Positions 10,940 to 62,566 are shown, counted from the first letter of the stretch. The stretch is DNA of 64,000 bases from Epiperipatus broadwayi (GCA_028023455.1 JAQFVV010000006.1:1488001-1552000), one strand, 5' to 3'. Numbers and translations are program-made. The notes: a model not told the origin generated them from the letters alone.

Positions 10940-11503
10940 TTAAGTACATGTACATTGTCTATTCTAAATGGAATTATAAGGGACTTGAACTCAGACTTTC
11001 AAACTCCCTAATAATTTCAAATCCCTTATAATTATATTTATTATAGACTTTATACATGTATTTAAATATTACATATTCAGCCTGTTTTCTGCCTATCCTT
11101 CTTCTCTATAATTAAATGGACATATTGAGGTCCTAGGTGTCAGGGGTCAGATTGACTTAAGGTCAACATGGGTAGAACAATAATATTGGCATCATCAAGG
11201 GCTTTCAGGGTTCCATCGTTGGATTTTCAATTATATGGATGGATGAAGAGTTGGAGAGTAGAGAAGATTGAAGCCTGTTCATTAAAGTTTGAAGATTTGC
11301 TATCTTAATATAAACTGAGCTCTGATTGTATATATGTGTAGGAGATGGTGTTCTGAACCAATCAATGAATGCTGGTTCATCACAAAATACGTACATTGCA
11401 GATCATTTATCTTTTTCACATGTATGTGGTCATGTGTATCAGTTGTATAAGATGAACTGGATAGCTGTGGGGAGTTTGAAAGGAGTTCAAGACCCTTATA
11501 ATT
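10940..11503 (+). mobile_element. Family A hammerhead-derived repeat with inverted ends and 16-bp TSD
   Basis: TSD atattatgagatatat at 10924-10939 and 11504-11519; inverted arms 10972-11008 / 11470-11503; body homologous to ~25770-26045 and ~44944-45300; degenerate hammerhead core at ~11360-11400. Confidence 0.75.
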
Positions 11504-11803
11504 ATATTATGAGATATATATTATATATAGGTATAAATTGTTGAGGGAAGAGTGTTGTTTGCTTTTAACTAACTCAAATTTGAAACCAACAAAAAAAAAT
11601 ATAAACATTTATGTACACATTAATGTACTGTCACATATACAATTGAATCAATAATGGAGGGGGACTTATATTACTTGTAGGTAACAATAAGCTTATTTTG
11701 TAGAATAAAGTTTGATTTGTGGAATTACCGTTTCAAATATAAAAGTCAAAGGGTTGGAGTATAGGCTTGAAATTGCTAAAATACACAGATAATTATTAGA
11801 ATT

Positions 11804-14800
11804 GTAATAATGGCATAAGGTATATCGACTGCTTAAAAATTTTACTTGGTTGTAACAACTATTGTTTAGTGTGGAGGAAAAAAATCTGTAAATAATTAAA
11901 CGTTGTTTTAATGGAATGAGGTAATTAAATTATTGTTTTGCCAGCTTTAATGCAATGTCAGAGTACCAGATGTGGAATATGAGATTTACAGATCGATTCC
12001 AGTTTTGGCATACTCAGCTCTCAGACTTTGTATGAATTCTCATGCCTATTGATTATTCATTTTATTTTTTTTGATCATTTGGTAAACAGGGTCAAAAGTT
12101 TAAAAATGTTGATCCAAACAATGCTCTAGGGAGATGCAAAGGGTGACTTGTGAATTTCGGTAAATATGTTATTTGATCAACAGATATTTTATCTATAAAG
12201 CATAATTAATTTCAGGCAGTTATTGAAGTGTAGTAACCAAGATTCAGATTCACTTGAAATCGTAAGAATAATTCTGCTGCGATCATAAGATTGGCAGATA
12301 TTGCCGAATGATTTGAATATTGGACAGTGATCACAATGATAGGAAAGTGATCATATAGCATTGGAAAAATACTTTGTCATCTAAAATAATATGATTGGTT
12401 GAGGCACCAGAAATTTGCTGACCATCAGCCTGGTGAAAGAATACCAAGCTGAATCTGTAAGTCATAAAATGATAGTCTGTTCACTGTTTGACTATCTGAT
12501 ATACTAACCCAAAGTACATGCCTCCACAAAATGAATTGAGAATCAAACCTGACATTATAATGAAATGGAGAAATAACCTGTCTATAAACTATGGAATAAA
12601 ATATACCAGAATTAGGGTAATCTTATCAAAGAATATTATAGTGATTTTGGACATTGCCTTATTTAATCCATAAATTTATAGGTTTTAGAAATATCAATTT
12701 TGTGTCAGTCAGATTCGGTCAATTTGAGACCTCAAACCGTTTCCTTCATGGTTATGTACAAGTTGTAGAATTATATTTTTATCAACAAGATTAATATTTC
12801 ATCAGTTTACATATACCAGTTAATCAGTGGATATCATTTCGCCTTTGCCTCATAGTTATGTATAAAAGGCCAATATTCTTGCAGTTGGAGTTTGTCGATT
12901 TGTTGTTCCCAATCCCTTCCTTCACTCTTGCCGAAGGGCTCTTTCTCTCTCTCATTAGATTTAACCAAATTGTTTTCCAATTTACTTTCCATTAATCGAT
13001 AGAGAATCGATCCTAGAACCTAAAGGTATGAGTCTGCTAGTCTACCCTCGACTAAATTGCACCGGCGGTCCAATAATATCACAAAATAGTAATGCAGTCA
13101 GTGGTTTTAGAAATTCCACTCTACATATATAATAATAAGATACATGAACGTCCCTTAAACGAACAGTAATATATCTATCTATATGCGCTAACACGCATTT
13201 AAAAGTGAAGTTAAATTGAGAATTGTAATACTAAGCTGGCTTAGCACTAAGTTGTCTTAGCACAGCGCAAAGCCAGCTTAGTATTATAATTCTCAATTTA
13301 ACATCATTTTTAACTGCGTGTCAGCGCATATAGATATATTGTACACATATATCGCATACAGAGATAGTTGTGTGCGGTTTAGAAAAGTGGTAGAATGGTG
13401 GAAATGAGAGCTAAAGGTAACCGAATTTGAAGACCAACCTGTCATTTCTGTTGTTCGATCGCCATATGATTTATCCTGTGAGAAATCACTCACTTTTTTT
13501 ACGCTCGCGCAGACACACGTTCACGGTTTATTTAAATATACAGTATACTCACAATAAATAGTTGATAAATTTGGACAATCATTAATTATTCTTATGATAA
13601 ATAGTTATGTTATTTTGTTATTTATTGAATATATATTCCATTTCTAATGAAAATTTCCAGCATTTAATAAATCCTCTTGACATTTAGGTATTTTATTTTT
13701 CATCTGTAGAAAAATTTAAACTTTCAGCTTGATCTCTAAGCCGCTTTGCTTTGTGTTCCTAGCCGTTTGATAGTTCATTTTTTTCTTTTTCAAATCTTTG
13801 CTTTTAAGAAGCCAAATCTGCTTTGAGGCGAAGTCTATTTTTTATTCTTATATTATTATTATTTTAAGACATTTTAATAATAATAAAAATATGAGGATGA
13901 ATTATTTTTTTATCACTTCGACCTTCGCAATTTATTTATGAGAGTTTTTTTTTTTTAGAATACTGGTTCAATCATAAATGATTTCTTCAAGTTTTATTTT
14001 TAAATGTTATCGATGTCTTTTTTTTTTTATATACTCACGGATTTATATGTGTATTTGGGCTATTACATTTTCGATTAATTCATTCATTGTTTACATGTGG
14101 TTAAAAATGCGGGATAATATTGAAAATTGTTTTAAGAGATAAATAGCTAGAGGACGACCAGAAAAATGATGGTTGGACTCGGTTACCCCAACAAAAAAAT
14201 AACTGAACATTCTAGAGAAAGTTATCTATAGGTCATTAGGTATCATTGTTGATTTGCAATCATTACAAATCTTTTCTTAATGTCGTTATTTTAGTTTGAA
14301 GCCACTAGATGGCAATGCAAAACCATATTGTAAAATGGTTTATAGTTAGCTGGTTTAGATGGGTGAAACTTTTTTTTTTTAATGTTTTTTTTTAATGTTT
14401 AGGTTATTCACTATTTATGCCTTTAGTGATCTCCAGTGTCTAAAGCAATTGACAGAAAATTTATTCTATGCATTTACATAGAAAATAGGATAAATAGATA
14501 GAGGAAAGTAGGACAAATAGATAGAGAATATATTACAGACAGTGGATAGAAAATTTGTTACAGAAAAGGAATTACAACTATGGGAAGCAGATATTAACTG
14601 TTACTTGGCCAAAAGAATGCTGATAATTTGAGGTAATTGTGCAATATTTAATCTGTCATTACGTTTGAATAAAGTTTTTACCAAAATAAATCAAAATTGA
14701 TATTGAAATTAATTTTAAACATAACTAAAAGAATGAAAAAATCAGTAGAAGCTATATATTTATTTTAAGAAAATTGCCCCCCCCCCCCCATGATGTTAAG

Positions 14801-15779: not shown

Positions 15780-15966
15780 CCAGTTATGATAAGTGTTCTA
15801 AAACATCAAACATCACATGATCACCATCTCTATACTAGCACATAATTTGTTGTAAACAAAGGCAAAACTCCCCATACAGTAGTGCCATTCTGTGACAAAC
15901 AGAGTAATCAATGGATGCCAGAAGGCTTGTGCATAAAATCCCTATCTAGTGCCTACTCATCCAATA

Positions 15967-16008
15967 TCCCCAGACTAGTTTCTGGCTTGTGGCCATCATC
16001 AGTGAGGA
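15967..16008 (-). ncRNA. Minimal type-I hammerhead ribozyme motif (family C), complete core
   Basis: UCCUCA CUGAUGA UGGC-CACAA-GCCA GAAA C-UA-G UC UGGGGA: 6-bp stem I, 4-bp stem II, palindromic stem III ACUAGU, GUC triplet; predicted cut between 15973 and 15972. Confidence 0.85.
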
Positions 16009-16415
16009 GCCTTGGATCTGAGAGACCACCTCGATCTTAGGATCTAATGCAACCCTCCAGCAGCCACCTTTTAACTCTACTTTACTACAAAACTATGAGA
16101 ATGAAATTGAAAACATTGTTAATATCTTCAATCTAAGCTCAATAGCTTATATAGTCATATGGGTCTGAACTCAATTCAGCACCCATACATTTTGGTGTCT
16201 GGCTCTTAAACAACCATAGCCACCACTATCCTATTAGGCAGGATTGGTGTTAAACCATCAAACATCACATGATCACCATCTCTATACTAGCACATTTGTT
16301 GTAAACAAAGGCAAAACTCCCCATACAGTAGTGCCACCCTGTGCCAAACAGAGTAATCAATGGATGCCAGAAGGCTTGTGCATAAAATCCCTACCTGGTG
16401 TCTACTCATCCAATA

Positions 16416-16457
16416 TCCCCAGACTAGTTTCTGGCTTGTGGCCATCATCAGTGAGGA
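16416..16457 (-). ncRNA. Minimal type-I hammerhead ribozyme motif (family C), complete core
   Basis: Identical motif to 15967-16008, 449 bp away in the same orientation. Confidence 0.85.
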
Positions 16458-16899
16458 GCCTTGGATCAGAGAGCACTGCACCTAGATCTTAGGATTTAAT
16501 GCAACCCTCCAGCAGCCACCTTTTAACTCTACTCACTGATGATGGCCACAAGCCAGAAACTAATCTGGGGATATTGGATGAGTAGGCACTAGATAGGGAT
16601 TTTATGCACAAGCCTTCTGGCATCCATTGATTACTCTGTTTGGCACAGGGTGGCATTACTGTATGGGGAGTTTTGCCTTTGTTTATAATAGTATTCTGTA
16701 TAATAAAAGTGAAATTATTGGAGGTTCCTTTAATAATGAAAGACATTTTTTTGAACTGTATTTCATCGGAACTGCTGCCATCAATATGATCTCATAGCAC
16801 TATTTTTATTATTTTTTAAAATATGATTAGCACTTATTCAACTACTGTTGCCAAAGGCGCAGAAAAGTTTATGATGCAGATTAAACCATTAATGTGCTT

Positions 16900-17135
16900 G
16901 AATATCATATGATCACCATTTCATATGCTTACACAGGCTGTTAATAACAGTAGTGAACTCTCCATACAGTAGTGCCACCAATCAATGGGTGCAAGAAAGT
17001 TCCTCCCTGACAAAAGCCACAAGTTAGCATCTAGTCTGGGGATATTGAATGAGTAGGCACTAGAGAGGATTTTATGCACAAACCTTTTTGCATCCATTGA
17101 TTACAAAGGCTTACACTTAGTGGCACTACTGTAAG
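16900..17135. repeat. Degenerate family C fold-back fragment
   Basis: ctctccatacagtagtgccac is inverted as gtggcactactgtaaggaga; decayed hammerhead ctgacaaaagccacaagttagcatctagtctgggga. Confidence 0.7.
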
Positions 17136-17284
17136 GAGATTAGATTGCAATTTATGGAAAATAAGAGAATAGCCAAAATAGTACTTAATTGGATTATGAG
17201 TAAAGGACAGGCAACAAAATGGGTGAGAAAGATAGTACAGTATGCAGGAGATTTGGATAAAGAATTTATGTCAGCATATGTATG

Positions 17285-24387: not shown

Positions 24388-24871
24388 ACTTTATCTTTCC
24401 TATTGCATTGCCAAATCCATATAATATTAATATCATCTGTGTTCTTTATTACTTTTACAATGCTTTATTTACAACCTAATATGAGTTTCGGTTGCCCCAG
24501 CAATCTTCTTCAGAACTATAACAAACATAATACAAATATATGAATGTAAATATACATGAACATATAATTTTACATTTTGTATATATATATCTTATAATCA
24601 TTATTTAATTATTACCTTTTTATATATTATACATTTTAGAATATAAAAAAGAGTAAAATGTACAATATATAAAAAGGTAATAATTAAATAATGATTATAA
24701 GATGTATATAAATAAAATGTAAAATTATATGTTCACGTATATTTATATTCATGTATTTGTATTATGTTTGTTATAATTCTGAAGAAGATTGCAGGGACAA
24801 TCGAAACTGTCATATTAGGTTGTAAAAAAAGCATTGTAAAATAATAAAGAACATAGATGATATTAATATTA
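24388..24871. mobile_element. Family F fold-back (~450 bp) with a hammerhead-like motif in each arm, one-sided tail and 11-bp TSD
   Basis: Arms 24422-24638 / 24654-24871; plus-strand CTGAAGA A GATTG-caggga-CAATC GAAAC T GTC at 24779-24811; ttaattaaaac at 24377-24387 and 24869-24879. Confidence 0.75.
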
Positions 24872-25689: not shown

Positions 25690-26045
25690 ATAGCCTTTCA
25701 CGCTTCCTACAACTATCTACTCCATCTTATACAATTGATACATATGACTACATACATGCGAAAAAGATAAATTCTCGGATTTTCAATGATATGGGTGGCT
25801 GAAGAGTTGGAGGGTGGAGAAGATTGAAACTTGTCCCTTAAAGTTTGAAGATTTTCTATCTTAATGTAAACTAAGTACTGATTGTATATATGTGTGAGAG
25901 ATGGTGATCTGGACCAACTGGTTCTGCATGAAATACATATATTGGAGATCATCTTTTTCACATGTATGTGGTCATGAGTATCAGTTGTATAAGATGGAGA
26001 TGATAGTTATAGGGAGATTGAAAGTCCGAGTTCAAATCCCTTCTA
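25690..26045 (+). repeat. Family A copy with inverted 5' arm; hammerhead core partly deleted
   Basis: ~25708-25772 is the reverse complement of ~25948-26012; ggaccaactg[deletion]gttctgcatgaaatacatatattgg. Confidence 0.75.
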
Positions 26046-26196
26046 ATTATTAACATAGGTACAGTGGGGATTTTTATTTATTTATAAGACTTAAGATGCA
26101 CAGTTTATAAAATATAGTAATTTTGATTAGTGTCTGGAGGGACATATAATGATTAGCGATGATGGTGATTTAGTTGGCTATTTCCATCATCTAATA

Positions 26197-28644: not shown

Positions 28645-28667
28645 TATCTATTTCTTGAAATATAATT

Positions 28668-30225: not shown

Positions 30226-30228
30226 ATA

Positions 30229-30238
30229 CCCTCCTCCC
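30229..30238 (-). other. Polypurine tract GGGAGGAGGG
   Basis: Three nucleotides from the 3' LTR on the minus strand. Confidence 0.85.
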
Positions 30239-32106: not shown

Positions 32107-32409
32107 TCACACTATATTTTACTAAATATATTTTGATATCTTAAAAAAAAATCGTAGTAAATTGTTTTGACTGCTTCCAAATCACAACGTGGTAGGTTTT
32201 CTCTTCCCCCCCCCAAAGCGCCATGCTACGTGTCTAATTTCTTTATCAACCACTCGGAAAACTATTTTCTGTCTTTCAATAAAACTATTTTAATCGAAGC
32301 AAACTTCACGTCTCTCTAATATTTCTATTTTACTTCCCCTCCTTTCCCTTATCGAATTTTTAATCTTTCTGCTCGGGCCCCCATACATTCCATTCTTCAT
32401 AAAGCCTTA

Positions 32410-33979: not shown

Positions 33980-34248
33980 AATTAGAGAAAAATGCGAAAT
34001 CTTAGATTATGGAAAGCTAGATTGAGAAACCACTATGTTCCTAAATTATTTAACACTTTACCCATTGAATTAAAAAAACTTAAAATATAGAAAAACTAAA
34101 AAGCATATTAAAAATAAATGAAAAACTGTAATTTAAAATATATAATATGTAATAAACAGTGAGGATTGCCAATTCCTCTACAAGCTTTATGATAAATGCT
34201 TAGCCAGAGCCAGCACTTAAAATATCTCTGTCAGGAACCCCTCCCCAA

Positions 34249-34291
34249 ACCCCTGACCATGGTTTCGTGCTTTGGCACTCCTCAGAGAGGT
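34249..34291 (-). ncRNA. Canonical minimal type-I hammerhead ribozyme motif (family D)
   Basis: ACCUCU CUGAGGA GUGC-CAAA-GCAC GAAA CCAUGG UC AGGGGU: all core nucleotides, G10.1-C11.1 pair, 6-bp stem I, palindromic stem III ACCAUGGU, GUC triplet. Confidence 0.92.
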
Positions 34292-34325
34292 GTCAGAGTA
34301 GGTTCAGACACTAGATCTACCCTGA

Positions 34326-34366
34326 CACCTCTGAGGAGTGCCAAAGCATGAAACCATGGTCAGGGG
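34326..34366 (+). ncRNA. Hammerhead motif (family D, inverted twin)
   Basis: CACCU CUGAGGA GUGC-CAAA-GCAU GAAA CCAUGG UC AGGGG; G-U closes stem II and stem I is shorter. Confidence 0.8.
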
Positions 34367-34632
34367 TTTGGGGAGGGGTTCCTGACAGAGATATTTTAAG
34401 TGCTGGCTCTGGCTAAGCATTTATCATAAAGCTTGTAGAAGAATTGGCAATCCTCACTGTTTATAACTTACAAGCTTAAGAGATAGGGTCATGTGATCTA
34501 TAAATTGTTCTTTGACTCTTATTTTGACTATATAATATGTAATGTTTATGAAATAGTATATATAAGCGATTTAACCCGCTGAAGAAGAAGCTGTCAGTAG
34601 TAACCAAAAACAATTAAATCAAATTAATCTGC

Positions 34633-34669
34633 GCCTAGTACTTTCGAGGTTTTCCCTCATATTCATGGC
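34633..34669 (-). pseudogene. Degenerate hammerhead motif from a separate family
   Basis: GCC AUGAAUA U GAGG-GAAAA-CCUC GAAA GUAC UA GGC: stems intact, palindromic AGUACU, two core substitutions (C3A, G8U). Confidence 0.6.
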
Positions 34670-35884
34670 CAAAATAGGTTATAAACCATTGCTGTAATGT
34701 TACTAAATAATAATGTTTATGAAAATATAATTTGATGTAGTCAGTATTTTATATTATGTATAACTAGTATATTACTGTCATATAGTTGTTCTTTTATTAG
34801 CTTATATTGTATAACTCTTAAAGTCAAAGGAAGTATAATTATTTAAATTATTCATGACAATCTTCCTTATGTAAAAACACAGCTAGTTCTTAGTAGAAGA
34901 ATGAAATTTTGGGTATATATATTTTAACATTTTTAAAAAATTAATTATTATTATTTATTTATACAAACACATATATTTTACTTGTATAAACAATTTATAG
35001 TAATTGAAAAAAATGTTCATTTTATTATTACACCATATATGTTAAAAGTCATTTTTCATCACTAGATGTCATCGTTGTTTTCTTTCTATTTTAATTTTTA
35101 GCAACATAAAATTTATTGATTATTTCGTTATACTTCTTAAATATTTTATCAAAAGCACCTCTAAAAGATAAGCAAAAAAAAAAAAGAGTTTGTCTAGAGA
35201 TTGATTCTATTGATGTCACATAAATATTGACTAATTTCTATTTAAAAAAGCTATTGTACAGTAGACAAAGTGTAATATGAACATTTAATATATTTTGAGA
35301 AATAAATATTTAATAATTTTTTAAATTCATTTACAATCTAATTCAAAGGTTGGTGTTTATATGCACAGTTGTTATTAATCTCTTTTATGATTGGTTACTT
35401 TTTGATAACTCTTGAAATTGTCTCTGCCATCTATGGATTAAAATTATAACAACTAAAATTTGAAATCTTTTTAAAGTTTCAAAAATAATTTATCACATGT
35501 GACTTAATTCATTTTTTCCTCTTAAAAATGCAATGGAAAAATGACATTTGTGCTGTCCAATAGAAATGACATATCTCATTCTCTGTGATCTCAAGAAATT
35601 TATAGCATACCATTAGTAATTTTACAAAAAAAAAGCATAATCAAAGGAAATTTTTTATTGATCGGAAAAAAAAAGTTAAACGAAATATCAGTATGATGAT
35701 TTAGCAACAATTAAGCTACTAATATTGTTGGAATTAAAGCATGATACGGAAGTCCCATATCCAAACATTTGATTTGAAATTTCTAAGGGATAATTTAAAT
35801 CCATGGATTGTAACAAGCATTTATAATATATATATATATATATATTTAACATACATCAATTACATGTATAAAGTTAAACTAAAG

Positions 35885-39257: not shown

Positions 39258-39625
39258 CTCCAGTATATCACATGATCACCATTTCATATGCTTACACATG
39301 CTGTTAATAAGAGTCGCAAACTCTCCATACAAAATAGTTCCACCATTGGAAACATGGTGTTTTCATCTTGGGCTCAAACTTTATAGTTAACCAAATAGGT
39401 AAAAGATGACTGCTTGAGGGTTGCATTAGGTCCTAAGATCTAGGCACGGTGCTCTCAAATTCAAGGCTCCTCACTGATGAAAGCCACCAGCTAGAAACTA
39501 ATCTGGGGTTGTTGGATGAGTAGGCACTAGATAGAGATTTTATGCACAAACCTTCCTGCATCCATTGATTATAAAAGCTTGCACTTGGTGGCACCACTGT
39601 GTGGAGAGTTTGGTACTCTTATTCT
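39258..39625 (+). mobile_element. Family C copy with inverted terminal arm; hammerhead at 39468-39508
   Basis: CTGATGA AAGC-CACCA-GCTA GAAAC TA ATC TGGGG; aataagagt.gcaaactctccatac is inverted at ~39597-39623. Confidence 0.85.
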
Positions 39626-40030: not shown

Positions 40031-40225
40031 GTAAGGTTGTATTAGATCCTAAGATCCAGGTGCAGTGCTCTCAGATCCAAGGCTCCTCACTGATGAAATC
40101 CAGAAGCTAGAAACTGGTCCGGGGAGTATTGGATGAGTAGCCACTAGATAGGGATTTTATGCGCAAACCTTTTTGCATCCATTGTTTGCATTGAGTTGCA
40201 CTATTGTATGGAGAGTTTAGCCTCT
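40031..40225 (+). repeat. Family C copy; hammerhead core at 40090-40119
   Basis: CTGATGA AATC-CAGAA-GCTA GAAAC TG GTC CGGGGA; core complete, stems weakened. Confidence 0.85.
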
Positions 40226-43200
40226 GTATAGTTTTAAATATATATGTTTGCGCATTAATAAATGTATATGTTTATGCATTTAAATATGTTTATGTAGTTT
40301 ATTTTACGTTAATAATTAAACAAAAACATATCTGTACTCTTAATTTTTTTTTTTTACAAAACTGTATTATATATATATATATAAAATAATGTATTATTAC
40401 TTATTGCTCTGAAGATAAGTGTTAAATCGTCAAAATGTAGGAAATGAATAATCAACAGAGTACTTAGCATCTTTTATTATTGGCTCTGTTGTAACAATAT
40501 TAACCTAAGCGTGGTAGTACTCTGAGCATGGCATGATGGTTGACTTTTTTGAATCATGTTTGGTCTTATCTTTCTTGCAGCTCTCAAACAGTTGACCACT
40601 AATTTAGATGGTTTATTGGTTTGTAGGCTCATATTTATGGATTTTTATGCATTCGGATGACTTTTGATTTGATTGGAGTGATCTCAATCTCTATTCAATT
40701 TCAAACTACGGTATGACTTTATAATAGTATGTTTCATTGATAAGGGCTTAACCGTTTTTCACAAAGTTATTGAAACTTTATTCATTTCTAATGGTACTGC
40801 CAATATAATTTACGTGAGCATATCTATACACAAGAGTATTGTAGCATAATGGACCCGCATATCCTTCAAGAATGTCAGTCCAAATGCAGATCTGGGAAAA
40901 TTTGGATATCCCCCCCCCCCAATTTTCAATCAGAAGTAAGATTTTTTTTCAGGTGACTAATTGGTCAGTAATTAGGATCTAGCTATTAACAAAAGAGCAA
41001 AACGAGCTACCACAATTCCTGGTAATTGGACATTTCCTTTGGTCGATTTTGGAAACATTTTTGTTCCGTAATCGTTTAGTTAAATACAGTCTTACTTGTG
41101 TTATTTACACTGATTTACCTCCATTTCAAAAATATTCACTAATTTGCATAAAAGTGTCAAAACCATTCTGATTGTAAGTAAAAAAACGAAATTTTTTAAT
41201 AAATAGTCATTTTGGGATAAAGGTCTGTCCAGCAGCCCTTTGCAGATGAACTGAAGAAGAGTGTATTTAACAGAGTTACCAATTATTGCAAGGGGAAGGG
41301 GATTTGAGTGATTTGTCCACCCTTGCTTTACTCTCTAGTTTAGGATAATTGGATACCATTTACTGATCAATTCTGGGTGGTCACATGTTTTGAGAGAAAA
41401 ATAGTAACTGTTGAAAAGAATTTTCAAACTCCAGATTATGGACATGTCTGTAGAACGATCCTTTACTTCCCTATGAGATTCTTCTAGTTGTAAGTTGAAC
41501 TTCCCTATGAGATTCTTCTAGTTGTAAGTTGAATTTATGTAATTATGGGTTTATATAGATTTATACACTTATAATAGTCTCATGGTATCACTAGTGATGC
41601 TTTTATCTGTCATGTGTAGGATCTGGATTTGAATTGGGGCAAATAAATTTGAATTTTTGTTTTTTTCAGATTATTGATTTATAACCAACCCATTTACTCG
41701 TGTTGGTCAGTAAGTAAGTGTCTATTCTTATTTTCAGAGTAAAATATTCAGAAACCTGTTTAGTGTTGTGTTGTAAAGGATGTCTACAACTCATGCATGC
41801 ACACACCTTGGAGTTGTTCTAAAGTGTAGATATATACTACAAAGAGCCATGTATTATAACCTTGATGGTTACTGTGTTGTAACCTTAATTTTTAATTTTT
41901 GACTCCTTTTAACCAGTAATAAATTATTCTTTTTATAATCATAATATAATAGATCGCTAAAGAATAATTTAAGTAACGTTTCTAAAACTCTCCTGATATT
42001 TAATAAAAGCTATAGCTGATACAGAATTGAGAAAATTACAGCTTTGAGGAATAATTTCTCTTTTAGCAGAAAAGAATCTCTTTTTTCTTCCGAAAATATC
42101 CCTGTAGAATTTATTTTAGAAAGTTTAATTTACAGTCGTAGAAAGTTTTTTTTTTTTAATAAAAAAAAAAAAAACAGTGAAAATAATTTATGAAATAAAA
42201 CTTTAATAGGGAATATATATATTTAATTCTGACAATCTTACAATTATATTATTTGAGGTTCAATATTTATGGAATTTAATTTTAATATATAGCTGCAAAA
42301 TAGTTTTATGTGTTCATTAAAGAATAGTAGAAATGAAGACAATGCTTAGAAATCTAACCAACTTCTAGGTAGTGAGAGTTTTTGGAGTTCATTTTTTGTC
42401 TTATTTTCTAGAAAACAGTAGCTAATTATCCATTTACTGACCAATTTCATGCATACATGTAAATTTATTTTGATTATTGGTGAATGCATTGCTAAATTTA
42501 AATTGATATTTTGTAGAATGTTCTTATAGCAGCACGCTTTCAGCTTTTTTAAACAGCCATTTTCAGCTATAACATTAATGGTAATAAGTACTTATTCATT
42601 GTCATTCATATGTTGACGAGTACCACACATGGTCATTTAATAGTTTATTTTAGTTTTAGCTATCGTAGCTAGATGCCATTTGTGTCCAAGAATTAACAGA
42701 AAAGGGAAATAGCTTTAATCAAAGAAAATATACTTCCACATCTCTGTAAATAACAAAACTTTAATAGTAGTTATTTGCATCAATATTATCAGAAAAATAA
42801 GTAAATTTAAATTTTTCCTGTTGTAAGTTATTAAATATTTATTTTTTGTTATGTTGTAGCGGTAATTCAAGTTTATATCAAGATATACACAAACATATAC
42901 AGGTAATTTTGATCCAAAATAAATATTTATATTAGATGAAAGTTGATTGGTTAATAAAATTGAAAAAAAAAAAATCAATTCTAATATTAGGTGAAAGTTG
43001 ATTGGTTAATAAAATTGAAAAAAAAAAATCAATTTTAAATATATATATATAATAATATTAACTACTTTGATGATGATTTATAACATAAGTACAACCCCTC
43101 CCAAAAGTATTTTATTTGTGTTTCAATTTTAATAAAATAAAAACAAAATGAAACTCAGGCACCAAACCTTCTAAATAGAAAGTTTAACTTTTGGAAAACT

Positions 43201-44943: not shown

Positions 44944-45300
44944 GGTCGTATTGACTTTAAGTCAACATGGGTGTTATAAGAATCCCAGCCGCAGGATGGC
45001 CTTTGAGCCTTCCATCATCAGATTTTTAATTGGGTGGCTAGTTGGAATGTGGAGTGGATTGAAGCCTGTCCATTAAAGTATGAAGATTGGCTATCTTAAT
45101 ATATATCTGAGCGCTTATTACATATTGTGTAGAGATGATAATCTAGACCTACTGATGATTGCTGGTTTAGCATGAAATAAGTAGATTGATGATTATTTAT
45201 CTTTTCAACATATATGTGTTCAAGTGTATCAGTGTTATGAGAAAGAGTGGAGAGTGGTGGGTTGTGTGAAAGTCTGTGCTCATATACCTTATATATAACA
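44944..45300 (+). repeat. Family A copy; hammerhead core retained at 45152-45183
   Basis: CTGATGA TTGCTG-GTT-TAGCAT GAAA TAAG TA; stem I not paired. A partial related copy lies at ~19720-19830. Confidence 0.75.
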
Positions 45301-45984
45301 TGTAGAAGGTTTACATATAACTTTTTAAAAGTATATTTTATTTGTATAAGCATATTAATATTTCCGGAAAACTTAACATCATGACGGATAAGAAATTCTG
45401 GTAGTCATCTGAAATCCAGGCACGGCCACCTGATGGCATTCTTTCTGTGCAAAAACACAAATATGCCGTTTACACGGACAAATTTACAGCATATAGAACA
45501 ATTCTGCTCATATTAGCCGTTAGCAGGTGTAGATGGCATTTCACACCAATATTACAGTCCGCTGATGTGCTTCGCAGCACTATGGAAACAGCAAACATTT
45601 AAAAGCTCACTACCATATGATGTGAGGGTGTATGGAATTCAAGTGGACGTAAATGTTTTCATGTGCATTCGAAGTAATGATGTTGCACCATACCTGATGT
45701 ACTATTACATAGTAATAATCGTAAGATCATCATAGTACTTCCCTACAGATTGTAGAATGTGATAAAAATTGGAAAAGTTAGGCCCATCACCATTTCACAT
45801 AAGTAACGTGTTGTATGTTGTTTTGTAAATCATAATGTCAGTTGTATGAGAGTAATACGTGTTTTGATGTACTGTTTGTACTCTCATCCGTTCCGGATCT
45901 GGAAAAACATCAGGTCCCATGAGTGCTGTCTTCCAGCGTTACACACTGAAATGTCTAATGCAATTAAAAAATGTAATGCAAATA

Positions 45985-49079: not shown

Positions 49080-49335
49080 TAAAAACATGTAGTAATTCCC
49101 TATCTAGTATATACTGAGCAGTGATAACAATATCAATATGTGTAAGAGAATATGATCTCGGCCAACTGATGAGCGCTGGCTCAGCGTGAAATGTGCATTG
49201 TGGGTATAATTTCTTTCACAAATTTTTGGTCAAATATTTATGATTACATCCCTCCACAAGGTGTTAAGGGTGGGTAGAAACCAGTCCCTACCTTGCCTGA
49301 AGTAGTATAGTGAAAATTACACTACAGTAAGATTA
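49080..49335 (+). repeat. Family B solo copy; hammerhead at 49162-49203
   Basis: CCAA CUGAUGA GCGCUG-GCU-CAGCGU GAAA UGUGCA UU GUGG. Confidence 0.85.
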
Positions 49336-52300
49336 TTCCTTAAATGGTTTTCCATTCCCTTAATATTTCTTTTCTGGGGTTATTTTATCCATTTGCTTTA
49401 TTTCAATTTTAGGCTGCCATTTAGTTCTAAAATTGCTAGATGTAACGATAATCATTTGCAAAAAGTACTAGTATATAGAAATATTACTTTTGCAACGTTT
49501 TTGGATTTTATTAAAGCAATATGTAATTTGAAAATATTATGGGATAAAATTGCACTGTTCTGTCTTATCAAATTGTGCGGATTAATGGGCAGGGAGACAT
49601 TAATTCACATAATTAATAACGCTTTAATATAATTTATACAACTTTAACGCAAAATTAGAAAATTTATATTACAGATTCTCTACTTTTTCTGCATTTTCAA
49701 TATCCATCGTTCGAAAAAATGTTAGCTAAACAAATAAAGAAAAGTAAAAATAGAAATTTTTAAATTTGAATTTGTAAATTTTGTGGTTGCCTTTTAAATA
49801 AATGTTTTCATGATCTTTATATAAACTATTTCCTCATTTGGTTCGCTTAGTCTGCCATAGTTACTCTTTTCATTGATTGTTAATATCTTTTTCATAGTTT
49901 CTACCATCATTTATTTTTGTTGATGTCTTAATCTATGTAAGGTTTAAATTATTTCATCCATCTGTGTGTATATCCTAGACCTGTTGTAAATACTGCATTT
50001 ATTTTTAAGCCTTTACACGGATAAAGAAAATTATGAATTGTAGCGGACCTTATATAGTTTATAGTTTAAATATATGTAAACATTTCATATATGTTTAATT
50101 AAATATTTCCATGTTCCGTGGATTGTTGCAATAAAGAATAGAATTGAGGAGATTGTATCCATGCAAACAGAGACAACTTTTAGCTTTTGATTTGCCAAAA
50201 AAAAAAAAAAAAAAAAATCAATTACTAGGCTAAACAATTTTTTTTTTTGTTAATCTACAATAGCTACTTCAACAAAAACATTCATAAAAGAGTTATTATA
50301 GATAATAATTGTCATTTAGTAGTAACATCATGAACTATAAGTTATCCCTGTTTTTATGGATATAATCTCATTTCTATTGTTTATTACATTTTACATATGT
50401 ATTGTACCGGTCGAAATTGTATGTTAACTCAACACGATTCACAGCCTGGGTAAAACTACCTCGAATCCAACTGTACGCAAGATCAAAGATAAAGAATACT
50501 TATGGATTTTGCCCTGTTTACCCACTCTCTAAATCTGCAAACTAATTAACAACATTTTTGAGGCAAGCAATTAATCTTTTCTACACTCCGTCCCACTAGT
50601 ATCAACGGTAGAGCTTGGATCTCAACTAATTCGTATGTCTAACTCTAATTATTAACTTTAATTAGACTATCTATTTATTTAAATATAAAATGGTATGTAT
50701 GTGACCTTGAGTCATAAGATAGCAGCACAATAATTAATTAGAAAATATATAATTTTAGAATGAATAAATAGAGTCGAACCACAGGTAGCTTAAATTCACA
50801 TATATATATATATTTAATATAACATTTTATAATTTATCTAATGTCTCTGATTTGATTTCATAAAATTATTTAATGAAAGTTTCTATTCTGTCGTTTATTA
50901 TGCCTCTGGCAAGAGAGCGGTATTGTTTATATGCCAATTTAACAAATGTAAATGATTATCGATTTGTGGGAAACGCCCGCCCAAGTCTGAGATATAGGAA
51001 TGGATATTTTTAAAGAGCTACAATAAACATAATTTTATTCTGATTGATTTTATTTTAAAAGAGAAATTGTTAACTCAAACTATAGGAACCGGTGTTGAAG
51101 AAAGTGACCCATTTAAAATATAAATGGATCACGATATTCGCAAATAAATATTTCAAGATTTAAAATATGTAAATTAATCAGATCGTGGCCAATCCACCAT
51201 AATGTGCTTAGACAAAAGAAAGTGAATAAATCCCAGCATTTGATATTACATTACTAGCATAGACTCAATTCACCTGCCACCGTTCCCGTGACGTCAAGAA
51301 ATAAAGAAAGAATGGTCTGCGCCATTGGCAAACCTAAAATATTTCAGGTGAAAGAATGAGAATCGCCAAGGCTATCTGAACTTAGCTTGCCCTGGTTCTT
51401 CCCATTATAGCTTTCATATCATGACAAGAAAATTGATGGCTAGTGAAATTATCACGTGGTCTAGTTATGATCTAGCAGCCACAAAGAACAAAAGACAAGT
51501 AACTAAGCAAAATACCAGCAAGGCAAAATACGAGTACTGGAGAATATATTTTAGCATTTAATTATATAATTGTGCTGAGCTATAAAGATTACATAAATGC
51601 ATATGGATTGATCAAGATCAGACCAACAAGAATAAAATAAGTATTAATTATTATTACGAATATTTGTAATGAGCGACACATATCTCCCTTCAACACAAAA
51701 TCCCACTAACATTTCAAATGACATTCTATTTCTCTCTTATTATTTAACATGAATATAATTTATAAACCCCTTCCTTTTTACTGTTTAAAAATGAAATAAA
51801 TTAACTGAATAAACTCTAATACTTGAATCTCATGTCTCCCCACAACTAAACCATGTACGTATAAATATAAAAAAAACACATAATAATATAAAATGATTTC
51901 ATCTCGACAAAATAAAGGTTGCTCCAAATATTAATCTTTCAGAGTTAGAGAATTATTCATTTTTATTTACCGACAAACGTTGGTCGGGAAATATGTAGCA
52001 AATATTGATTTAGATAAGCTTTTGTCGAGATGGAACAAAATTGGCATATATTTCATTGTAAGTAATTGATAATAATAATTTCTAAACCGCAATTAGAAGG
52101 AAGTTTAGCATTTAAAATGCATAATCTTAAAACAGATAGAAAGAGAGCAAAAAGGTATTAGATTTTAAGTAATAGCAAGAGTAGTTTACAGACTATTAAA
52201 TTAAATATTTTAAATTACATTTAAATTACGTTATGGGGATTACATTTTAGGAGACATTAAAATTTAGCAGGGTTTACATTATTTGGTCACTGGAGTTTAG

Positions 52301-55300: not shown

Positions 55301-56033
55301 ATGAATGCATTATTGTTTGGGAATTTATAAATTGAACACCGGAAGTGACGTTGGGGTACAGTTTATGGAATTTGAGCTCCAGGGTTCACTGAACAGGGTT
55401 TTAGCTCATGAATGACAGCAATTGAATGGTTTACTATTCACTAGTTTGAGCATCATAAGTGATAGCTATGCCATGATCGCTATGATCCACGGATATCAAG
55501 GTCTAGAATATGCCACTCTACGATTGGTTCAAACAGACGGGGTATTCCCAGTAATTATAATGTGTATTAAATCTTTTATTTAACACTTAATACCTTGCAA
55601 AATATATTCACTAAATCTCCAAAATTTTAATGTCTTTTAATATACGAAGTTCCCTGCGTGGATAGCTCAATAGTTGTCAATAAATTCAAGAGCTAAAGAT
55701 TTATGGTTTAAAGTTCAACCTACCAATTTTGATATGTTTCAGATATGATACATTTTTCAAGTTTATTTAAAAAAATTTATCGGTGCTTTCTTTATTGCAG
55801 TGTCATCATGTCTCAACCGTTTGACCTTCCAGAAATTAAGATCATCCTAATAATTTTTATTAGACATTCATTAGACTAGAGATAATCCAATAATGAATAA
55901 TATTTCTCTAGTTTAATTTTCACTACACCACTCTCACGGAAGGTAGGGATATGTTTCTATCTTCTTTTAACCCTTTGTGGAGGAATGTAATTATAAACAT
56001 ATGATTAAAGACATGTGAAAAAGACCTATGATT

Positions 56034-56077
56034 CCCAAGATGCATATTTCATGCTGAACCAGCACTCATCAGTTGAC
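56034..56077 (-). ncRNA. Minimal type-I hammerhead ribozyme motif (family B), complete core
   Basis: UCAA CUGAUGA GUGCUG-GUU-CAGCAU GAAA UAUGCA UC UUGG; AUC triplet, 4-bp stem I. Confidence 0.8.
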
Positions 56078-56465
56078 ACAGACCACAATCTCTTACACAT
56101 ATTTTTATCATTGTTCAGTTGGTTAGTATAAACTGAACAGTCATAAAAATGTGTGTGAAAGACCATGGACTGGGACATCTGATGAGCGCTGGTTCAACAT
56201 GAAATATGCATCTAGGAGATCATGAATTTTTTTCACATGTCTTTGGTCATATGTTTAAGATTACAACCCTCCACCCAATGCTAAAAGTGGATAGAATCCA
56301 GTTCTACTTTGCGTGAGGATGGTGTAAGTGAAAATTACACTAATTATTCATTATTGGACCATCTTCAATCTAATGAATGACTAATAAAAATTTTTAATAT
56401 ACTTTTAGTAAGCGATTTGTGTCAAAGTTGTGAGGGGAGCCCATTTGGCACTTATCACTTAAACT

Positions 56466-56700
56466 GTAATAGTTTTAACAAGGCTGTAAACCTTAGCAAT
56501 GAGCGTCTGAAAAAATCGTCACTAGGGACCTCTGTAGGTCTTTAAAACACATGCTTACGCTATTTTCTTCATAGCGTAAGCATGTGTTTTAAAGACCTAC
56601 AGAGGTCCCTAGTGACGATTTTTTCAGACGCTCATTGCTAAGGTTTACAGCCTTGTTAAAACTATTACTGAAATAATAGTGAGCGTTTAATAAAATTTAT
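56466..56700 (+). mobile_element. Hairpin element: two 98-bp perfect arms, 7-nt loop, 32-nt tail containing AATAAA
   Basis: 56466-56563 is the exact reverse complement of 56571-56668 by eye; inserted into a family B unit with an imperfect ~10-13 bp duplication. Confidence 0.9.
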
Positions 56701-58304
56701 AATTACAATTAAACAGTAGTAATTTGCTATCTATATCTATATACTGAACACTCATAAAGGTATGTGTAAGAGTTTGTGGTCTGGGCCATGAATTGCTGGT
56801 TCAGCATTAAATGTGCATCTCGGGGATCGTAAATCTTTTTCGCTCATCTTTGGTCATACGTTTAAGATTACATTCCTCCACAAGGTGCTCTAAGTGGATA
56901 GAATCCAGTCCCTAACTTGTGTGAGAGTGGTGTGAGTGGAAATTTCTCTGTAGAAGTACTATTTATTAAGATCATCATCTTTTATGCTTGCATTTACAAA
57001 TTTGATAAAAACATTCCCCATCTTGCATGAGAGTGGGGGGATGTGTTATTGTGTTGTCAACATTAGCATGGGGATTACATGCTTGATACCTCCAACCCGC
57101 CTGATGGATGAATGTTATTCATGAAATGAAAGAAAGAAATCTAAATTTCTACATTGGTGGACGATTGCAATATGTTGGAGTTAAGATGAAAAATGCATTA
57201 AAAAAATGAGAGAAAAAATACTCTTATTTTTTATTTTTATTTTGATAATAATATAGGTACATAGGGTCTGAAAATTTTGACAAAACCATATTTTTTTTTT
57301 TTTTTTTATTTTTTGCAGATATGTAAAGACACTTGAATGAACTCCCCCCCCCCCCCACTAAAAGATTCTTGGCAACATTTTTTACGAACTGCAAAGATGA
57401 ATATTGTTAAACATAACATCCGAAGCAGCAACTGGGGCACATCTGTCTGCTACGCCTACGATGGTGACAAGTCAAATCTGAATGTTCCATAGCAGTACAT
57501 CTGGCTTCTACAGCTATAATATTCCAAATCTAGATTAAAAAAACTTGGAAAATGAAAAAATAGTTTGAGATTTCTTTTTTAACTAGTCGATCCATAACTG
57601 AATCAATTAATTATTCATTATTGATCAGTAAATGGATATGCAGATATATTTAGTGAATCAAGCAATGAATACTTATTATCTAAAACTATTTTTTTCTAGT
57701 TTTTTCACTGTTGCAAGGGAATTGTTGGTGAAGGCCTATTAGCCTTCAAATTAGATAGGTATTGTTTCGCCTACCATACCTTTCCAAAGTGTTTATATCA
57801 TTTTTCATACCATATTTATCTGATATATTTAGGGTGACTATATACCTTTGCAATGTATATGATAGTCTTCATAGATCTTATAATAAACACCAATGTTTTG
57901 GATTTATGTATGTAGTTTCATACCTTCAAGAGTATTAGTCTTCAAATGTTTTATCCATCTGCAATTAGATATACACCTAATTCTGGTTTTACGTGATAGA
58001 TTGGTTTCTGAAAATTACGTGTATAAAAAAATACATTGTCCATATGGAAAATTAGAAGATTGATTCCGGACTGAAGAAATCAATGAAAATAATAAAATAA
58101 ATCATACGAAAAATCTTGTTAGAATCTTATCTTTGAATGTTATCAAATTTTATTTCATAAACGTTGCACATAAATAAAAACGAATTATAGCATCATACAT
58201 TTTATTTGAAAAGCAAAAAAAACGTAAAGAATTAATGAATATAAAAATTGGGCAGAATATTATGTAAACCAAAATGCTTTCCTATAGACATTGTTCCTTA
58301 AAAC

Positions 58305-58560
58305 AGACAAAACTCTCCATACATTAGTGCCATTCAGTGGATGCCAGAAGGCTTGTGCATAAAATTTACTATTTACTGCCTACTCATACATAATCCCCAG
58401 ACTAGTTTCTAGCTTGTGGCTTTCATCAGTGAGGAGCTTTGGATGTGAGAGCACTGCACCTAGATCTTAGGATCTAATGCAACCCTCCAGCATCCATCTT
58501 TTATCTCTACTTAACTACAAAACTATGAGTCTGAAGTTGAAAACACAATAATATTTTCAT
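58305..58560 (-). repeat. Family C copy; hammerhead at 58394-58435
   Basis: UCCUCA CUGAUGA AAGC-CACAA-GCUA GAAA CUAG UC UGGGGA. Confidence 0.88.
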
Positions 58561-58699: not shown

Positions 58700-59520
58700 A
58701 TGTTTCTGTAGTGTAATTTTCCCTACACCACTCTCACAAGGTAGGGACTGTTTCTATCCCCTTTAACATCTTGTGAAGAAATGTAATCATAAACATATGA
58801 CCAAAGACGTGAAAAAAGATGTATGATCTCCAAGATACACATTTTGTGCTGGATCAGCACTCACCATTTGGCTCAGATCACAATCTCTTACCCATATCTT
58901 TATCATTGTTGAGCATGTATAGATAGATAATTACTACAGTTTGATTGATAAGCGTCAAACTTACCACCCTCACAACTTTAACACAAACCACATGATGGAA
59001 GTGTATTAATAATTTTTATTAGTCATTCGTTAAACCAGAGATTATCCGCTTAATGAATAATATTTCTAATTTTCCACTACACTCCTAGAACACAAGGTAG
59101 GGACTAGATTCTACCCACTTTTAAAACCGTTTGGAGGGGTATAATCATAAACACTTGATCAAATTGCACTATAGAAATATTCATTAAATAGATAATTTGT
59201 AGTCTAATGAATGTAAAAATTATTAATATACTTTCATCACATGGTTTGTGTCAAAGTTGTGAGGGCAGTAAGTCTGACACTTATCAATTAAACTGAAGTA
59301 ATTAGTTATCTATATATACTAAACAATGCTAAAGATGTGTGTAAAGGATTATAGTCTGGGCCAACTGATTTGGTTTAGCATAGAATGGACATCTTCGGAA
59401 TCATACATCTTTGGTCATATGTATTGATTGCATCCAACCATAAGATGTTAAAAATGGATAGAAACCAATCCTTATGTTGTGTGAGAGTAGTGTAGTGACA
59501 ATTACACTTCAGAAATATTG
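58700..59520. mobile_element. Family B ~820-bp fold-back with internal 356-bp tandem period; hammerheads degenerate
   Basis: aaggtagggact at 58738 and 59094; left end ctgtagtgtaattt is inverse to right end aattacacttcag. Confidence 0.85.
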
Positions 59521-61353
59521 GAGGATTATACTAATATGGATTAGTCTATATTTTGGGGTGTGAGTAAGCATATGAAAAATCATGTGTAATGCATTAGTAA
59601 TGCATTAATATGGATTATTCTCATAGGTTAATTAGAGTATCTTATTTGGTAAAAAGTAGTTTAATGTTAAAGCAAATAGCGAAATTCAGAGTAAAAAAGA
59701 TTGGGAATATATTTATCATCTTTTAAAGCTTCTATTTGTAAAGGGTTAAACAAAAGTGGTATTTGATGGATAGTAAGAAAATTTCAGGAAAGAGAAGTTT
59801 ACCTTTACATTGGTAGCCAAAATGTTATTCTGTTAACAATATCCAGTTTCTGTCTATTTATATGTTTTATCTTGGGAAGAATTAAGTTGAAATGGGAGGA
59901 TTAAAATTTATGAGAGTAAGGATTAAGCATCCTAATTCAGCTTTGTATATTCATGAAGTTGATATGGTCATGAAATATTTTTTTGATTAGGCCAAGACTG
60001 ACTTTGTAGAGGTTAATGAGATCAGAAGAAGATTTAAAGGGATTTTTGATTAATAACTATAGACCTGAAACTATTAAACTGATGAAAATTTTACCTAATT
60101 TAAAAGATAGATGAAGTTAGATTGGAATTGTGGGTAGTTTGTAAAAATTTTACTAATCTCATACAATCCTTTTTTATTTTCACATTTTGCTATATTATTT
60201 CTTATAAATACAATTATACTCCTTACTTTAAATACATTGAAAAACATGATTTATTACATAATGGATGTTTCAACTGCCTTGCAAATTTCTTCAGAATTAT
60301 AATATATTAATAAATAAAAAACTGCAAATTAAATAATGAGCAATATTACAGTAAAAAATTATATAAAAGTAAGATCGTAATTATAGTGATAAAACCTGTG
60401 GGCTTCTCAGTTGTGGTTGAAAATTTTTTAAAATTTATTATAGGATAAAATTCCAACCAAAGTATTTCTTAATGACCAATTCAAGCTAAATATTGAACCT
60501 ACATGTGTTTCGTGTGATAATTATCCAGGAGAAATGCTATAACTCTTTCAAACCTCCCCACACTTCTCATCTCTACACTTATTCGTTTTCTAAGCGTACA
60601 ATCAATCTCGAGAAATTATTTAAAAAATATATAAAATACATGTAGCCCTATAATTCATATGTAATTATTCAATCCCTAAGGACCATGTGGTTTGCATGCT
60701 GCTTCATAATATTTGACAATAAGAAATACAATGTACTCAAAAAAAGTAACGAGGAATGGTTCAACTTGTACTTATACTCTCTCAAATTTTTACCCATGAA
60801 CATCATGACCAAAACTTGGTAATCTATAATCTACCTTAGTTGTGTGCTCTCATAGCTTGAACTTTTATTATTATTAATCCTCTCCTTCAAGATTTCATTC
60901 TTTAAAATAAATATCTAGGCACTTCAATATATGGATATACATCCGTTTGGTTTTGCGGTATTAGACTATGCCACTTTAAATTTGGATCATTTTTCATTTG
61001 AGTTGAACAGCGTATTGTACTATTGATACCATTATAGTTGCAATTCCATATGTTTGCCTATGTAACTTAAATTTATTCTATTGTAAATATATTAATATTT
61101 GTACATAATTAGTCAGTGAAATTTATATAAAAATATTATGGTGACAATTTGAAATTCCAAAAATTATTGTTTATAATTGATGTAATTTATATAATAGCTA
61201 GGGGATATTGGTATGTTCTTTCAGCAGCATTACCTTGTAACAAAGATAAAGTTTGAATTTAATGGTACAGACAAGAGCTCATCTCGTGATATGTATTGAT
61301 TCTGTTTCATATATATTCTGTATATATTTTTATTAAGCTTCATATTTTATTTT

Positions 61354-61990
61354 GTATATGTGCAATTTGTCCATGTTTCTTTGAACACTTTTTAGAGAAA
61401 AAAAAAATCATATATATGTACACACAATCTTCCTTTTCAACTGTCCTGCAGTCTTCCTCAGAGCTATAATATAATGACATAAAATAAATAACTATATAAA
61501 TAATGACATTAAAAATGTAAACAATAAAATTAAAAACAGAGCAAAACAAAATATATACACAATCTTACATTTCGACTGTCCTGCAGTCTTCCTCAGAGCT
61601 ATGATACAATGACAAAATAAATAACTATATAAATAATGACATTAAAAATGTAAACAATAAAATTAAAAACAGAGCAAAACAAAATATATACACAATCTTA
61701 CATTTCGACTGTCCTGCAGTCTTCCTCAGAGCTATGATACAATGACAAAATAAATAACTATATAAATAATACCATTAAAAATGTAAACAATAAAATTAAA
61801 AAACAAAACAAAACAAAAAATATAATATCATAGCTCTGAGGAAGACTGCAGGATAGTTAAAAACGTAAGATTGTGTGTACATATATACAATAATTTTTTT
61901 TTTTTTTGCTAAAAAGCACTCAAAGTAAGATGAACAAAGCGCATTTATATAAAACATTACAGCAAAAGAAACGAAGTGGTGAATTTAGTA
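61354..61990. mobile_element. Family E: three 133-135-bp tandem units with hammerhead motifs plus an inverted copy and tail
   Basis: ctgtcctgcagtcttcctcagagcta at 61441, 61576 and 61709; inverted copy near 61836; candidate 12-bp TSD atattttatttt (61342-61353, 61991-62002, low complexity). Confidence 0.85.
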
Positions 61991-62566
61991 ATATTTTATT
62001 TTAATCTGGTTTTATTTATATATATTATATTTTTAATTTTATCTATATTTTGTCTTGTTTATTCTTTATTTTATTCATTCCATTCTTTTGTCCTATTATT
62101 TATTTATTTATTTCATATTCTTTTATTCATCTTGTTTTTATTGACTGCAGGCCGGACTGTCGAAATATCAATTTATACATAAAAGTTTGCAATTAAGTAT
62201 TTAAAGAGTAGAATTGTTTTTATTTAGTACTGTGTCTGCGTCATTGTCTTTTATTATATCTTTATTTATATGAATTTGAAAAGAATGGGGAAATGTGGAG
62301 ATGTTTATTATATCTATAAAGATATTATATAGGGGTCAGAGAAAGGTGAATAACTCCGTGTGTGTAAATTTAAAAAAATCAGATATATTAATCTTTAACT
62401 GAGGTTTAAAGTTTATATCTGTGCTAGGGATAATCTCTAGTTTCAAAAATGATTAGTAATAACCATTAGTGTATTTATCTGAAATGGATGGCGTCAAAGT
62501 TGTGAGTGGAGGGAGTTTGACAATGGTAAATGAAAATGTAACAATTGGAAAAGCCTATGCACAGAA

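Follow-up and report, generated by a model that had tools for sequence, protein, structure and literature searches.

Families of short non-coding hammerhead repeats in 64 kb of the Epiperipatus broadwayi genome, probably retrozymes derived from Penelope-like elements

A 64-kb stretch of the Epiperipatus broadwayi genome carries families of short non-coding repeats with hammerhead ribozyme motifs. We analysed this whole stretch as one window (G000:C6:1488001-1552000, from an animal assembly of 5.6 Gb in 18,588 contigs) and read it, with a probability of about 0.8, as holding short non-coding retroelements of six or more lineages (A/B, C, D, E, F and G), namely animal retrozymes without long terminal repeats (LTRs) that derive from Penelope-like elements (PLEs). 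The hammerhead-bearing elements occupy about 9% of the window, which is AT-rich (GC 27-36%) and has a single long open reading frame (ORF), a 350-amino-acid retrotransposon gag ORF. The phenomenon is already published for animal retrozymes and PLEs and entails no new principle.

Hammerhead motifs occur in the window far above chance. We searched it with a strict type-I descriptor (helix I of >=4 bp, CUGANGA, helix II of >=3 bp, GAAA, helix III with A15.1-U16.1, and H17) and took the chance level from 200 dinucleotide-preserving shuffles. Five complete motifs were found, three in family C and one each in D and B, against a mean of 0.035 and a maximum of 1 in the shuffles. A relaxed run added the plus-strand D motif at 34325-34367, which is near-complete, as is the minus-strand C motif at 58394-58435. 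All seven keep the core C3U4G5A6N7G8A9...G12A13A14...A15.1-U16.1 plus H17 in type-I order. Short BLAST with family reference motifs raised the census to 23 sites, intact through destroyed (Table 1).

An initial annotation of the window had listed hammerhead sites in six unrelated repeat families. Every site that it named is present, give or take a few bases. The count of six holds only once the families are regrouped as A/B, C, D, E, F and G; sequence comparison joins A and B, which had been kept apart, into one superfamily. A motif in every family proved partly right: C, D and B have complete ones, the A motifs in the window are decayed, and E and F show the core and helix II only.

Rfam recovers one of these families under suitable search conditions. 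Scans of the whole window at the gathering threshold and at E up to 10 returned tRNA only, with no hammerhead. When the D region was searched alone, model RF00163 (Hammerhead_1), whose gathering score is 34, gave the minus-strand motif 34.3 bits and the plus-strand one 23.3 bits. Because the D motif reaches threshold in this small search, the whole-window miss is a filter effect.

Base pairing is kept across families with differing sequence. MAFFT misaligned hammerheads between families, and helices were parsed by rule. Helices I, II and III are paired with differing sequence in C, D, A/B and G, and compensatory helix II changes are seen within C, D and B. A two-sided change from G-C to A-U marks the C subfamily of the motifs at 58394 and 39468, the former also differing from young C copies by A.A at its first helix II pair. 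A D variant at locus L047 turns GUGC/GCAC into AUGC/GCAU on both sides, and the B copy at 49160 and one at L094:1009 replace U-A with C-G. Helix III is self-complementary in C (ACUAGU), D (ACCAUGGU), G (AGUACU) and the A-type majority sequence (AUACGUAU), and in B if G.U pairs count. With a helix I of 6 bp, a helix II of 4 bp, a helix III of 1-2 bp closing a palindromic loop and a predicted outer closing stem, C and D fit the canonical metazoan type-I design. The short self-complementary helix III marks a dimer-type design; cofolding predicted dimers to be stable, their helix III being extended, as in D with -31.2 kcal/mol against 2 x -11.8 kcal/mol.

Core conservation is measurable in the older A/B copies. 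All three A copies in the window are decayed, and the majority sequence of 23 A-type copies has an intact hammerhead with helix I ACCAA/UUGGU and helix II GUGCU/AGCAU. Among 43 A/B copies met by chance, untargeted, in fetched DNA, the 11 core columns are conserved at 0.846 against 0.757 for the flanks (P = 0.018 by resampling), a modest signal of the kind expected for dead copies. The comparison of core with flank, which the initial annotation had put forward as a check, is informative to this modest degree in A/B and uninformative in C and D, whose copies are 95-99% identical.

Table 1. Hammerhead-bearing elements, their motifs and the Penelope remnant in the window, by family (strand "." for two-armed insertions)
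Feature	Position	Strand	Details
C head-to-tail array, 1.6 units of 449 nt	15799..16533	-	period 449; genome copies 95-99% identical
C complete hammerhead, helix I 6 bp, helix II 4 bp, C17	15967..16008	-	helix III A-U closes loop CUAG
C complete hammerhead	16416..16457	-	predicted outer closing stem AUCCAA/UUGGAU
C inverted 5'-truncated arm, head-to-head with array	16529..16688	+	
C complete hammerhead in inverted arm	16530..16571	+	loop III CUAA, helix I 4 bp
C 3' fragment, older	17001..17139	+	~80% identical to young copies
C old copy	39354..39611	+	decayed hammerhead 39468-39509
C old copy	40035..40230	+	decayed hammerhead 40084-40125
C subfamily copy	58310..58559	-	near-complete hammerhead 58394-58435
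D two-armed head-to-head insertion	34154..34528	.	short arm (-), long arm (+), 64 nt longer at 3' end
D complete hammerhead	34249..34291	-	RF00163 34.3 bits, E = 8.9e-7 in small search; predicted cleavage 34255|34254
D hammerhead, helix I weakened to 3 bp, 10.1-11.1 G.U	34325..34367	+	RF00163 23.3 bits
A copy	45001..45304	+	hammerhead 45146-45190, core intact, U.U at helix II base, helix III altered
A copy	11200..11509	+	hammerhead core 11356-11400 destroyed
A copy	25775..26053	+	hammerhead 25902-25946, 5' core deleted
B two-armed head-to-head insertion	55848..56475	.	minus arm 55848-56119, plus arm 56127-56475 (77 nt longer)
B complete hammerhead, helix I 4 bp, helix II 6 bp	56034..56078	-	predicted cleavage 56039|56038
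B hammerhead, core intact, helix I broken	56173..56217	+	
B copy	56706..56968	+	decayed hammerhead 56780-56824
B copy	58749..58913	-	decayed hammerhead 58829-58873
B subfamily copy	49083..49345	+	hammerhead 49160-49204, helix I broken
E three 133-bp tandem units and inverted partial unit	61416..61900	-	
E mini-hammerhead-like cores	61423-61467, 61558-61602, 61691-61735; 61830-61874	-; +	first three minus, last plus
F two-armed head-to-head insertion	24388..24868	.	minus arm with 34-nt extra 3' tail, 24388-24421
F mini-hammerhead-like cores	24474-24519; 24773-24818	-; +	
G 3'-end fragment	34580..34735	-	mini-hammerhead 34633-34670
Decayed C-terminal GIY-YIG remnant of Penelope-like element	59913..60038	+	42 amino acids, 50% identical to L094 GIY-YIG ORF, in-frame stop

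The families are non-coding and numerous. First-look searches gave 171 candidates for C, 1623 for D, 2697 for B, 1883 for F, 1894 for E and at least 2151 for G, counts that should not be taken for copy numbers. Copies met by chance in the fetched DNA (~0.2-0.3 Mb, a small and non-random sample) suggest very roughly 10^5 copies each for C and for A/B and 10^4 to 10^5 for F. The elements have a GC of 0.21-0.44. C and D units contain no ORF of >=120 amino acids, and among the 87 copies fetched from C, D and B, similarity ends within ~0.4-0.6 kb with no coding part attached. Annotation based on ORFs would, as had been supposed, miss these families, whose units are non-coding. C, D, E and F have no similarity to one another outside the motif.

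C and D occur in three forms: two-armed insertions, head-to-tail arrays and single 5'-truncated copies. Arrays with the 449-nt C period lie in the window and at other loci, and cleavage predicted in the window's array at 16422|16421 and 15973|15972 would release a 449-nt monomer. D arrays elsewhere in the genome have a 435-nt period and reach six units within 3 kb; in the six-unit array each unit has an Rfam-recognised hammerhead (34.3 bits). All 15 D two-armed insertions, the window's own included, pair one short arm with one long arm (+64 nt) that continues further at its 3' end. The extra tail is 34 nt long in F, where it also follows the arm at L025; D has 64 nt and B 77 nt. The D tail, and apparently the C tail, is identical to the first bases of the array's next unit.

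Each two-armed insertion of D, C or F is framed by one target duplication of its own, 9-15 bp long overall. The window's D insertion has a 15-bp duplication, TATATAATATGTAAT, at 34139-34153 and 34529-34543, and its F insertion an 11-bp one, TTAATTAAAAC, at 24377-24387 and 24869-24879. Duplications were found in 15 of 15 D insertions (12-15 bp, different each time) and in eight of nine independent C insertions (9-14 bp, each unique). Loci L006 (contig C16282) and L009 (contig C10) show one C insertion with reverse-complementary target duplications (CTCAGATATT, AATATCTGAG), and C16282, a small contig, probably assembles one place on C10 a second time. On the question of the two D arms spreading together as a unit, arm-to-arm identity is nearly equal within and between loci (0.964 vs 0.959).

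This anatomy bears on another conceivable origin of the two-armed structures, as satellite DNA or as DNA transposons of the fold-back or miniature inverted-repeat kind, in which hammerhead-like strings would be incidental. The long near-perfect inverted arms do produce microRNA-like hairpin matches in Rfam, and the tandem arrays look like satellites. Such an origin is nonetheless highly improbable and we rejected it: the duplications vary over 9-15 bp instead of being fixed, the arms are unequal at their outer ends, head-to-tail arrays and single 5'-truncated copies belong to the same families, motifs exceed chance more than 100-fold, and the helices covary between families. A short interspersed element (SINE) derived from tRNA and carrying a hammerhead, of the Sm-alpha type, was rejected as well; at E up to 10 no tRNA match appeared in the C array, the D insertion, the B insertion or loci L049, L014 and L062.

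Penelope coding sequence lies in and near the window. PLE proteins match the window at 59913-60038 only, where a GIY-YIG remnant has decayed (Table 1), and the earlier statement that the window has no PLE reverse transcriptase (RT) or GIY-YIG ORF holds for intact ORFs. L094, 27 kb upstream of the window, is a Penelope copy with RT and GIY-YIG ORFs; behind the latter stands a hammerhead (L094 5854-5897) with the swapped core UUGAGAA (U3-A8). Another, with the core AUGAGUA (A3-U8), stands behind an RT gene fragment at L093 (6659-6706, minus strand). Some 45 nt downstream of the remnant in the window, at 60081-60120 on the plus strand, is a decayed hammerhead-like sequence with CUGAUGA, an A/U-rich hairpin and AAAA for GAAA, and a further E/F-like core lies at ~60268-60368 on the minus strand.

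The relation of the short families to autonomous PLEs can be narrowed. No RT or GIY-YIG ORF was found in or beside the copies of A-F examined, so these families are at most non-autonomous PLE relatives; with only the 42-amino-acid remnant in the window, we rejected their identity with autonomous PLEs. They might still be merely heavily 5'-truncated 3' ends or terminal repeats of such elements, a view to which the hammerhead layout of G, matching the one behind the RT gene fragment at L093, the GIY-YIG remnant itself and the extreme 5' truncation known in PLEs (PMC8557442) all lend something. We regard it as improbable. Complete units of 449 nt (C) and 435 nt (D) are strung together in arrays, each 3' end leading directly into the unit's 5' part with no ORF between; coding sequence is not reached in any of the 87 fetched copies, and PLE proteins match nothing in the window beyond the remnant.

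E, F and G resemble Penelope hammerheads in their cores. E and F have the motif in common and nothing else: CUGARGA, one extra A after A9, a helix II of 5-6 bp and GAAA, with helix II differing on both sides (GACUG/CAGUC in E, GAUUGC/GCAAUC in F). The motif at 34633, earlier described as an orphan, turned out to belong to the high-copy family G, whose first-look candidates are 94-98% identical. Its core is AUGAAUA (A3-U8), with an extra U after A9 and helix II GAGG/CCUC, and its layout is that of the hammerhead at L093, 7.6 Mb away. The window's G copy is a 5'-truncated 3'-end fragment whose hammerhead is laid out like one behind a Penelope RT gene. E and F have an extra A between positions 9 and 10.1, G and L093 an extra U, and C, D and A/B no extra base. 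E, F and G fit the PLE mini-hammerhead class.

Retrozyme-like spread would account for the forms that these elements take. In transcripts of tandem copies, two neighbouring hammerheads would fold into an active dimer and excise unit-length RNA, which a host ligase would circularise. With circular or multimeric RNA as the template, a PLE reverse transcriptase and GIY-YIG endonuclease acting in trans would then begin copying at preferred 3' sites, into staggered cuts in the target. Arrays, inverted arms and 5'-truncated copies would result. The retrozyme-like population proposed in the initial annotation is partly borne out by high-copy non-coding families, tandem monomers of 435-449 nt, 5' truncation, head-to-head arms and duplications of 9-15 bp, with A and B counted as one lineage.

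Several observations weigh against the retrozyme reading. In the limited genome DNA compared, no autonomous PLE was identified with a 3' end in common with A/B, C, D, E or F. C and B, searched alone, are not hit by any Rfam hammerhead model up to E = 10, likely because the model's helix III is longer than theirs, and the 10.1-11.1 pair, usually G-C, is G.U in B and U-A in C. No credible helix I exists in E or F, even in the F majority sequence. PLE mini-hammerheads cleave poorly in vitro, even as dimers (PMC4209133). Public runs with family C are contigs guessed to be RNA, in which the repeat is covered heavily and unique flanks not at all; these contigs show only that family C is present in several related organisms. 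Most fetched copies are young and were picked by similarity to the window's copies, which biases junction frequencies. Finally, only one of 74 C copies that reach the 3' end begins at the first base after the cleavage site, so linear self-cleaved monomers are not the usual integration template.

Where C copies do begin is recorded here as a pattern only. Their 5' ends peak at unit positions 1, 293-296 and 343, the unit's first base and both edges of the hammerhead fold, in a sample of 74 copies biased toward composites resembling those in the window. In D, the arms begin at the outer stem of helix I. In a recurrent C composite (L006-L021; window 16529-16535 and 16579-16585) the hammerhead's 5' edge is the start of one arm, and the other arm starts 13 nt past the cleavage site, just outside the closing stem. 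At the L006 junction the arms overlap by ~7 nt, CTACTCA being the reverse complement of TGAGTAG, and the composite junction suggests that two cDNAs were joined where they are briefly complementary, beside the folded ribozyme.

These ends raise the alternative that the hammerhead fold is a structural module of the template RNA and no efficient self-cleaving ribozyme. The elements would then spread by linear read-through transcripts, with circles absent, and the fold might serve the Penelope reverse transcriptase as a recognition, stalling or template-switch site. The avoidance of the cleavage site by copy ends, the C ends at 293-296 and 343, the position of D arms, the poor in vitro cleavage of PLE mini-hammerheads and the retention of core and helix II without helix I in E and F would all suit such a role. 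Yet catalytic core bases, H17 and a self-complementary helix III are all kept across unrelated families, as dimer catalysis requires, related metazoan retrozymes cleave and accumulate as circles (PMC7229834), and the 5'-end peaks come from the biased sample. We consider a purely structural role unlikely.

A more specific reading of the two-armed insertions, somewhat more doubtful again in our estimation, is a Penelope-specific, double-primed reverse transcription. Both cut ends would prime on ribozyme RNA, possibly circular, and the fold would be the point at which synthesis stops or switches. In its favour are one unique duplication per insertion, the pairing of a long-tailed with a short-tailed arm, arm 5' ends at fold edges and the microhomology join. 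If it were true, the ribozyme would have a role in integration besides RNA processing, and the helix-I-less core of E and F would be a working trans or dimer-only variant.

Read as retrozymes, these elements matter in two practical respects. They should have explicit models when the repeats and genes of this genome are annotated. The young C, D and F insertions, with intact motifs, exact duplications and staggered tails, are material on how Penelope-type tandem and inverted copies form, and could also show whether dimer-type hammerheads cut in vivo.

Other repeats share the window. At 28667-33899 on the minus strand lies a non-autonomous LTR retrotransposon with direct repeats of ~1.5 kb (28667-30145 and 32422-33899, 96-100% identical); its 350-amino-acid ORF at 31054-32106 matches Retrotrans_gag (PF03732) and a pol gene is absent. 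We considered this 28.7-33.9 kb repeat as a PLE and rejected it as a gag-only LTR element. A segmental duplication of ~3 kb (4470-7498 and 12414-15331, 90-98% identical, spaced ~7.8-8.0 kb apart) surrounds, in its first copy, the only Rfam-detected tRNA gene (6318-6389, minus strand, 39.7 bits). Near-perfect hairpin palindromes of ~100 nt at 56515-56619, which sits between two family B copies, and at 62573-62668 give microRNA-like Rfam matches on both strands and are probably small inverted-repeat transposons. A 275-bp unit occurs twice at 26197-26780 (98% identical). Rfam aligns 26619-26780 as a hairpin whose sides contain GGGAUUCGAACC and GGUUCGAAUCCC, similar to a tRNA T-arm, and the two units may be a tRNA-derived SINE pair.

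The window's elements can be set beside several known systems. Plant LTR retrozymes have type III hammerheads in true LTRs, a primer-binding site and polypurine tract, 4-bp duplications and mobilisation by Gypsy elements (PMC4918200). Both groups are non-autonomous hammerhead retroelements, circular RNA processing being a feature of the plant ones; the type III motif, LTRs, primer-binding site and polypurine tract, 4-bp duplications and Gypsy mobilisation do not apply here.

The Sm-alpha and Sj-alpha SINE-like elements of Schistosoma and newt satellite 2 are high-copy repeats of a few hundred nucleotides with a type-I hammerhead whose weak helix III needs dimers. The families described here are likewise high-copy short repeats with a type-I hammerhead. 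Unlike in Sm-alpha, no tRNA-like head for RNA polymerase III was detected in the window's C array, D insertion and B insertion, and unlike hammerhead satellites, the copies are dispersed insertions with target duplications rather than long satellite blocks.

PLE mini-hammerheads, on which Lunse, Weinberg and Breaker (2017, cited in PMC6765202) reportedly worked, offer another parallel. An extra base between positions 9 and 10.1 is listed as a hallmark of the mini-hammerheads in PLE terminal repeats (PMC4209133, Cervera and de la Pena 2014), and E, F and G have it. Also alike are a minimal or self-complementary helix III, implying dimers, the covariation of core positions 3 and 8 (A3-U8 in G, U3-A8 at L094) and the many single and opposite-facing motifs from truncated copies. 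The parallel breaks down in that A/B, C, D, E and F are unattached to an RT or GIY-YIG gene in the copies examined, that G and L093 have A3-U8 and the published covariant U3-A8, and that E and F lack helix I. PLE insertions are often 5'-truncated, form partial tandems, have an inverted 5'-truncated copy next to them and carry a tail of 30-40 bp at one end (PMC8557442, Craig et al. 2021). Truncation, partial tandems, inverted copy and one-ended tail are all seen here, and the tails (F 34 nt, D 64 nt, B 77 nt) compare with that published length.

A further likeness is to metazoan non-LTR retrozymes (PMC7229834, Cervera and de la Pena 2020), and animal retrozymes have been derived from the pseudo-LTRs of PLEs (bioRxiv 10.64898/2026.07.22.740005, Li, Clavereau and Pollet 2026). 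Those elements are known as linear and circular RNA, and ours are read from DNA alone; many copies here are two-armed and head-to-head, besides forming tandem arrays. Shared by both are low GC, target duplications of more than 4 bp and co-occurrence with PLEs. C and D further match them in their non-coding tandem units of 150-450 bp with one type-I hammerhead each, built with a helix I of 6 bp, a helix II of 4 bp and a helix III of 1-2 bp with a palindromic loop.

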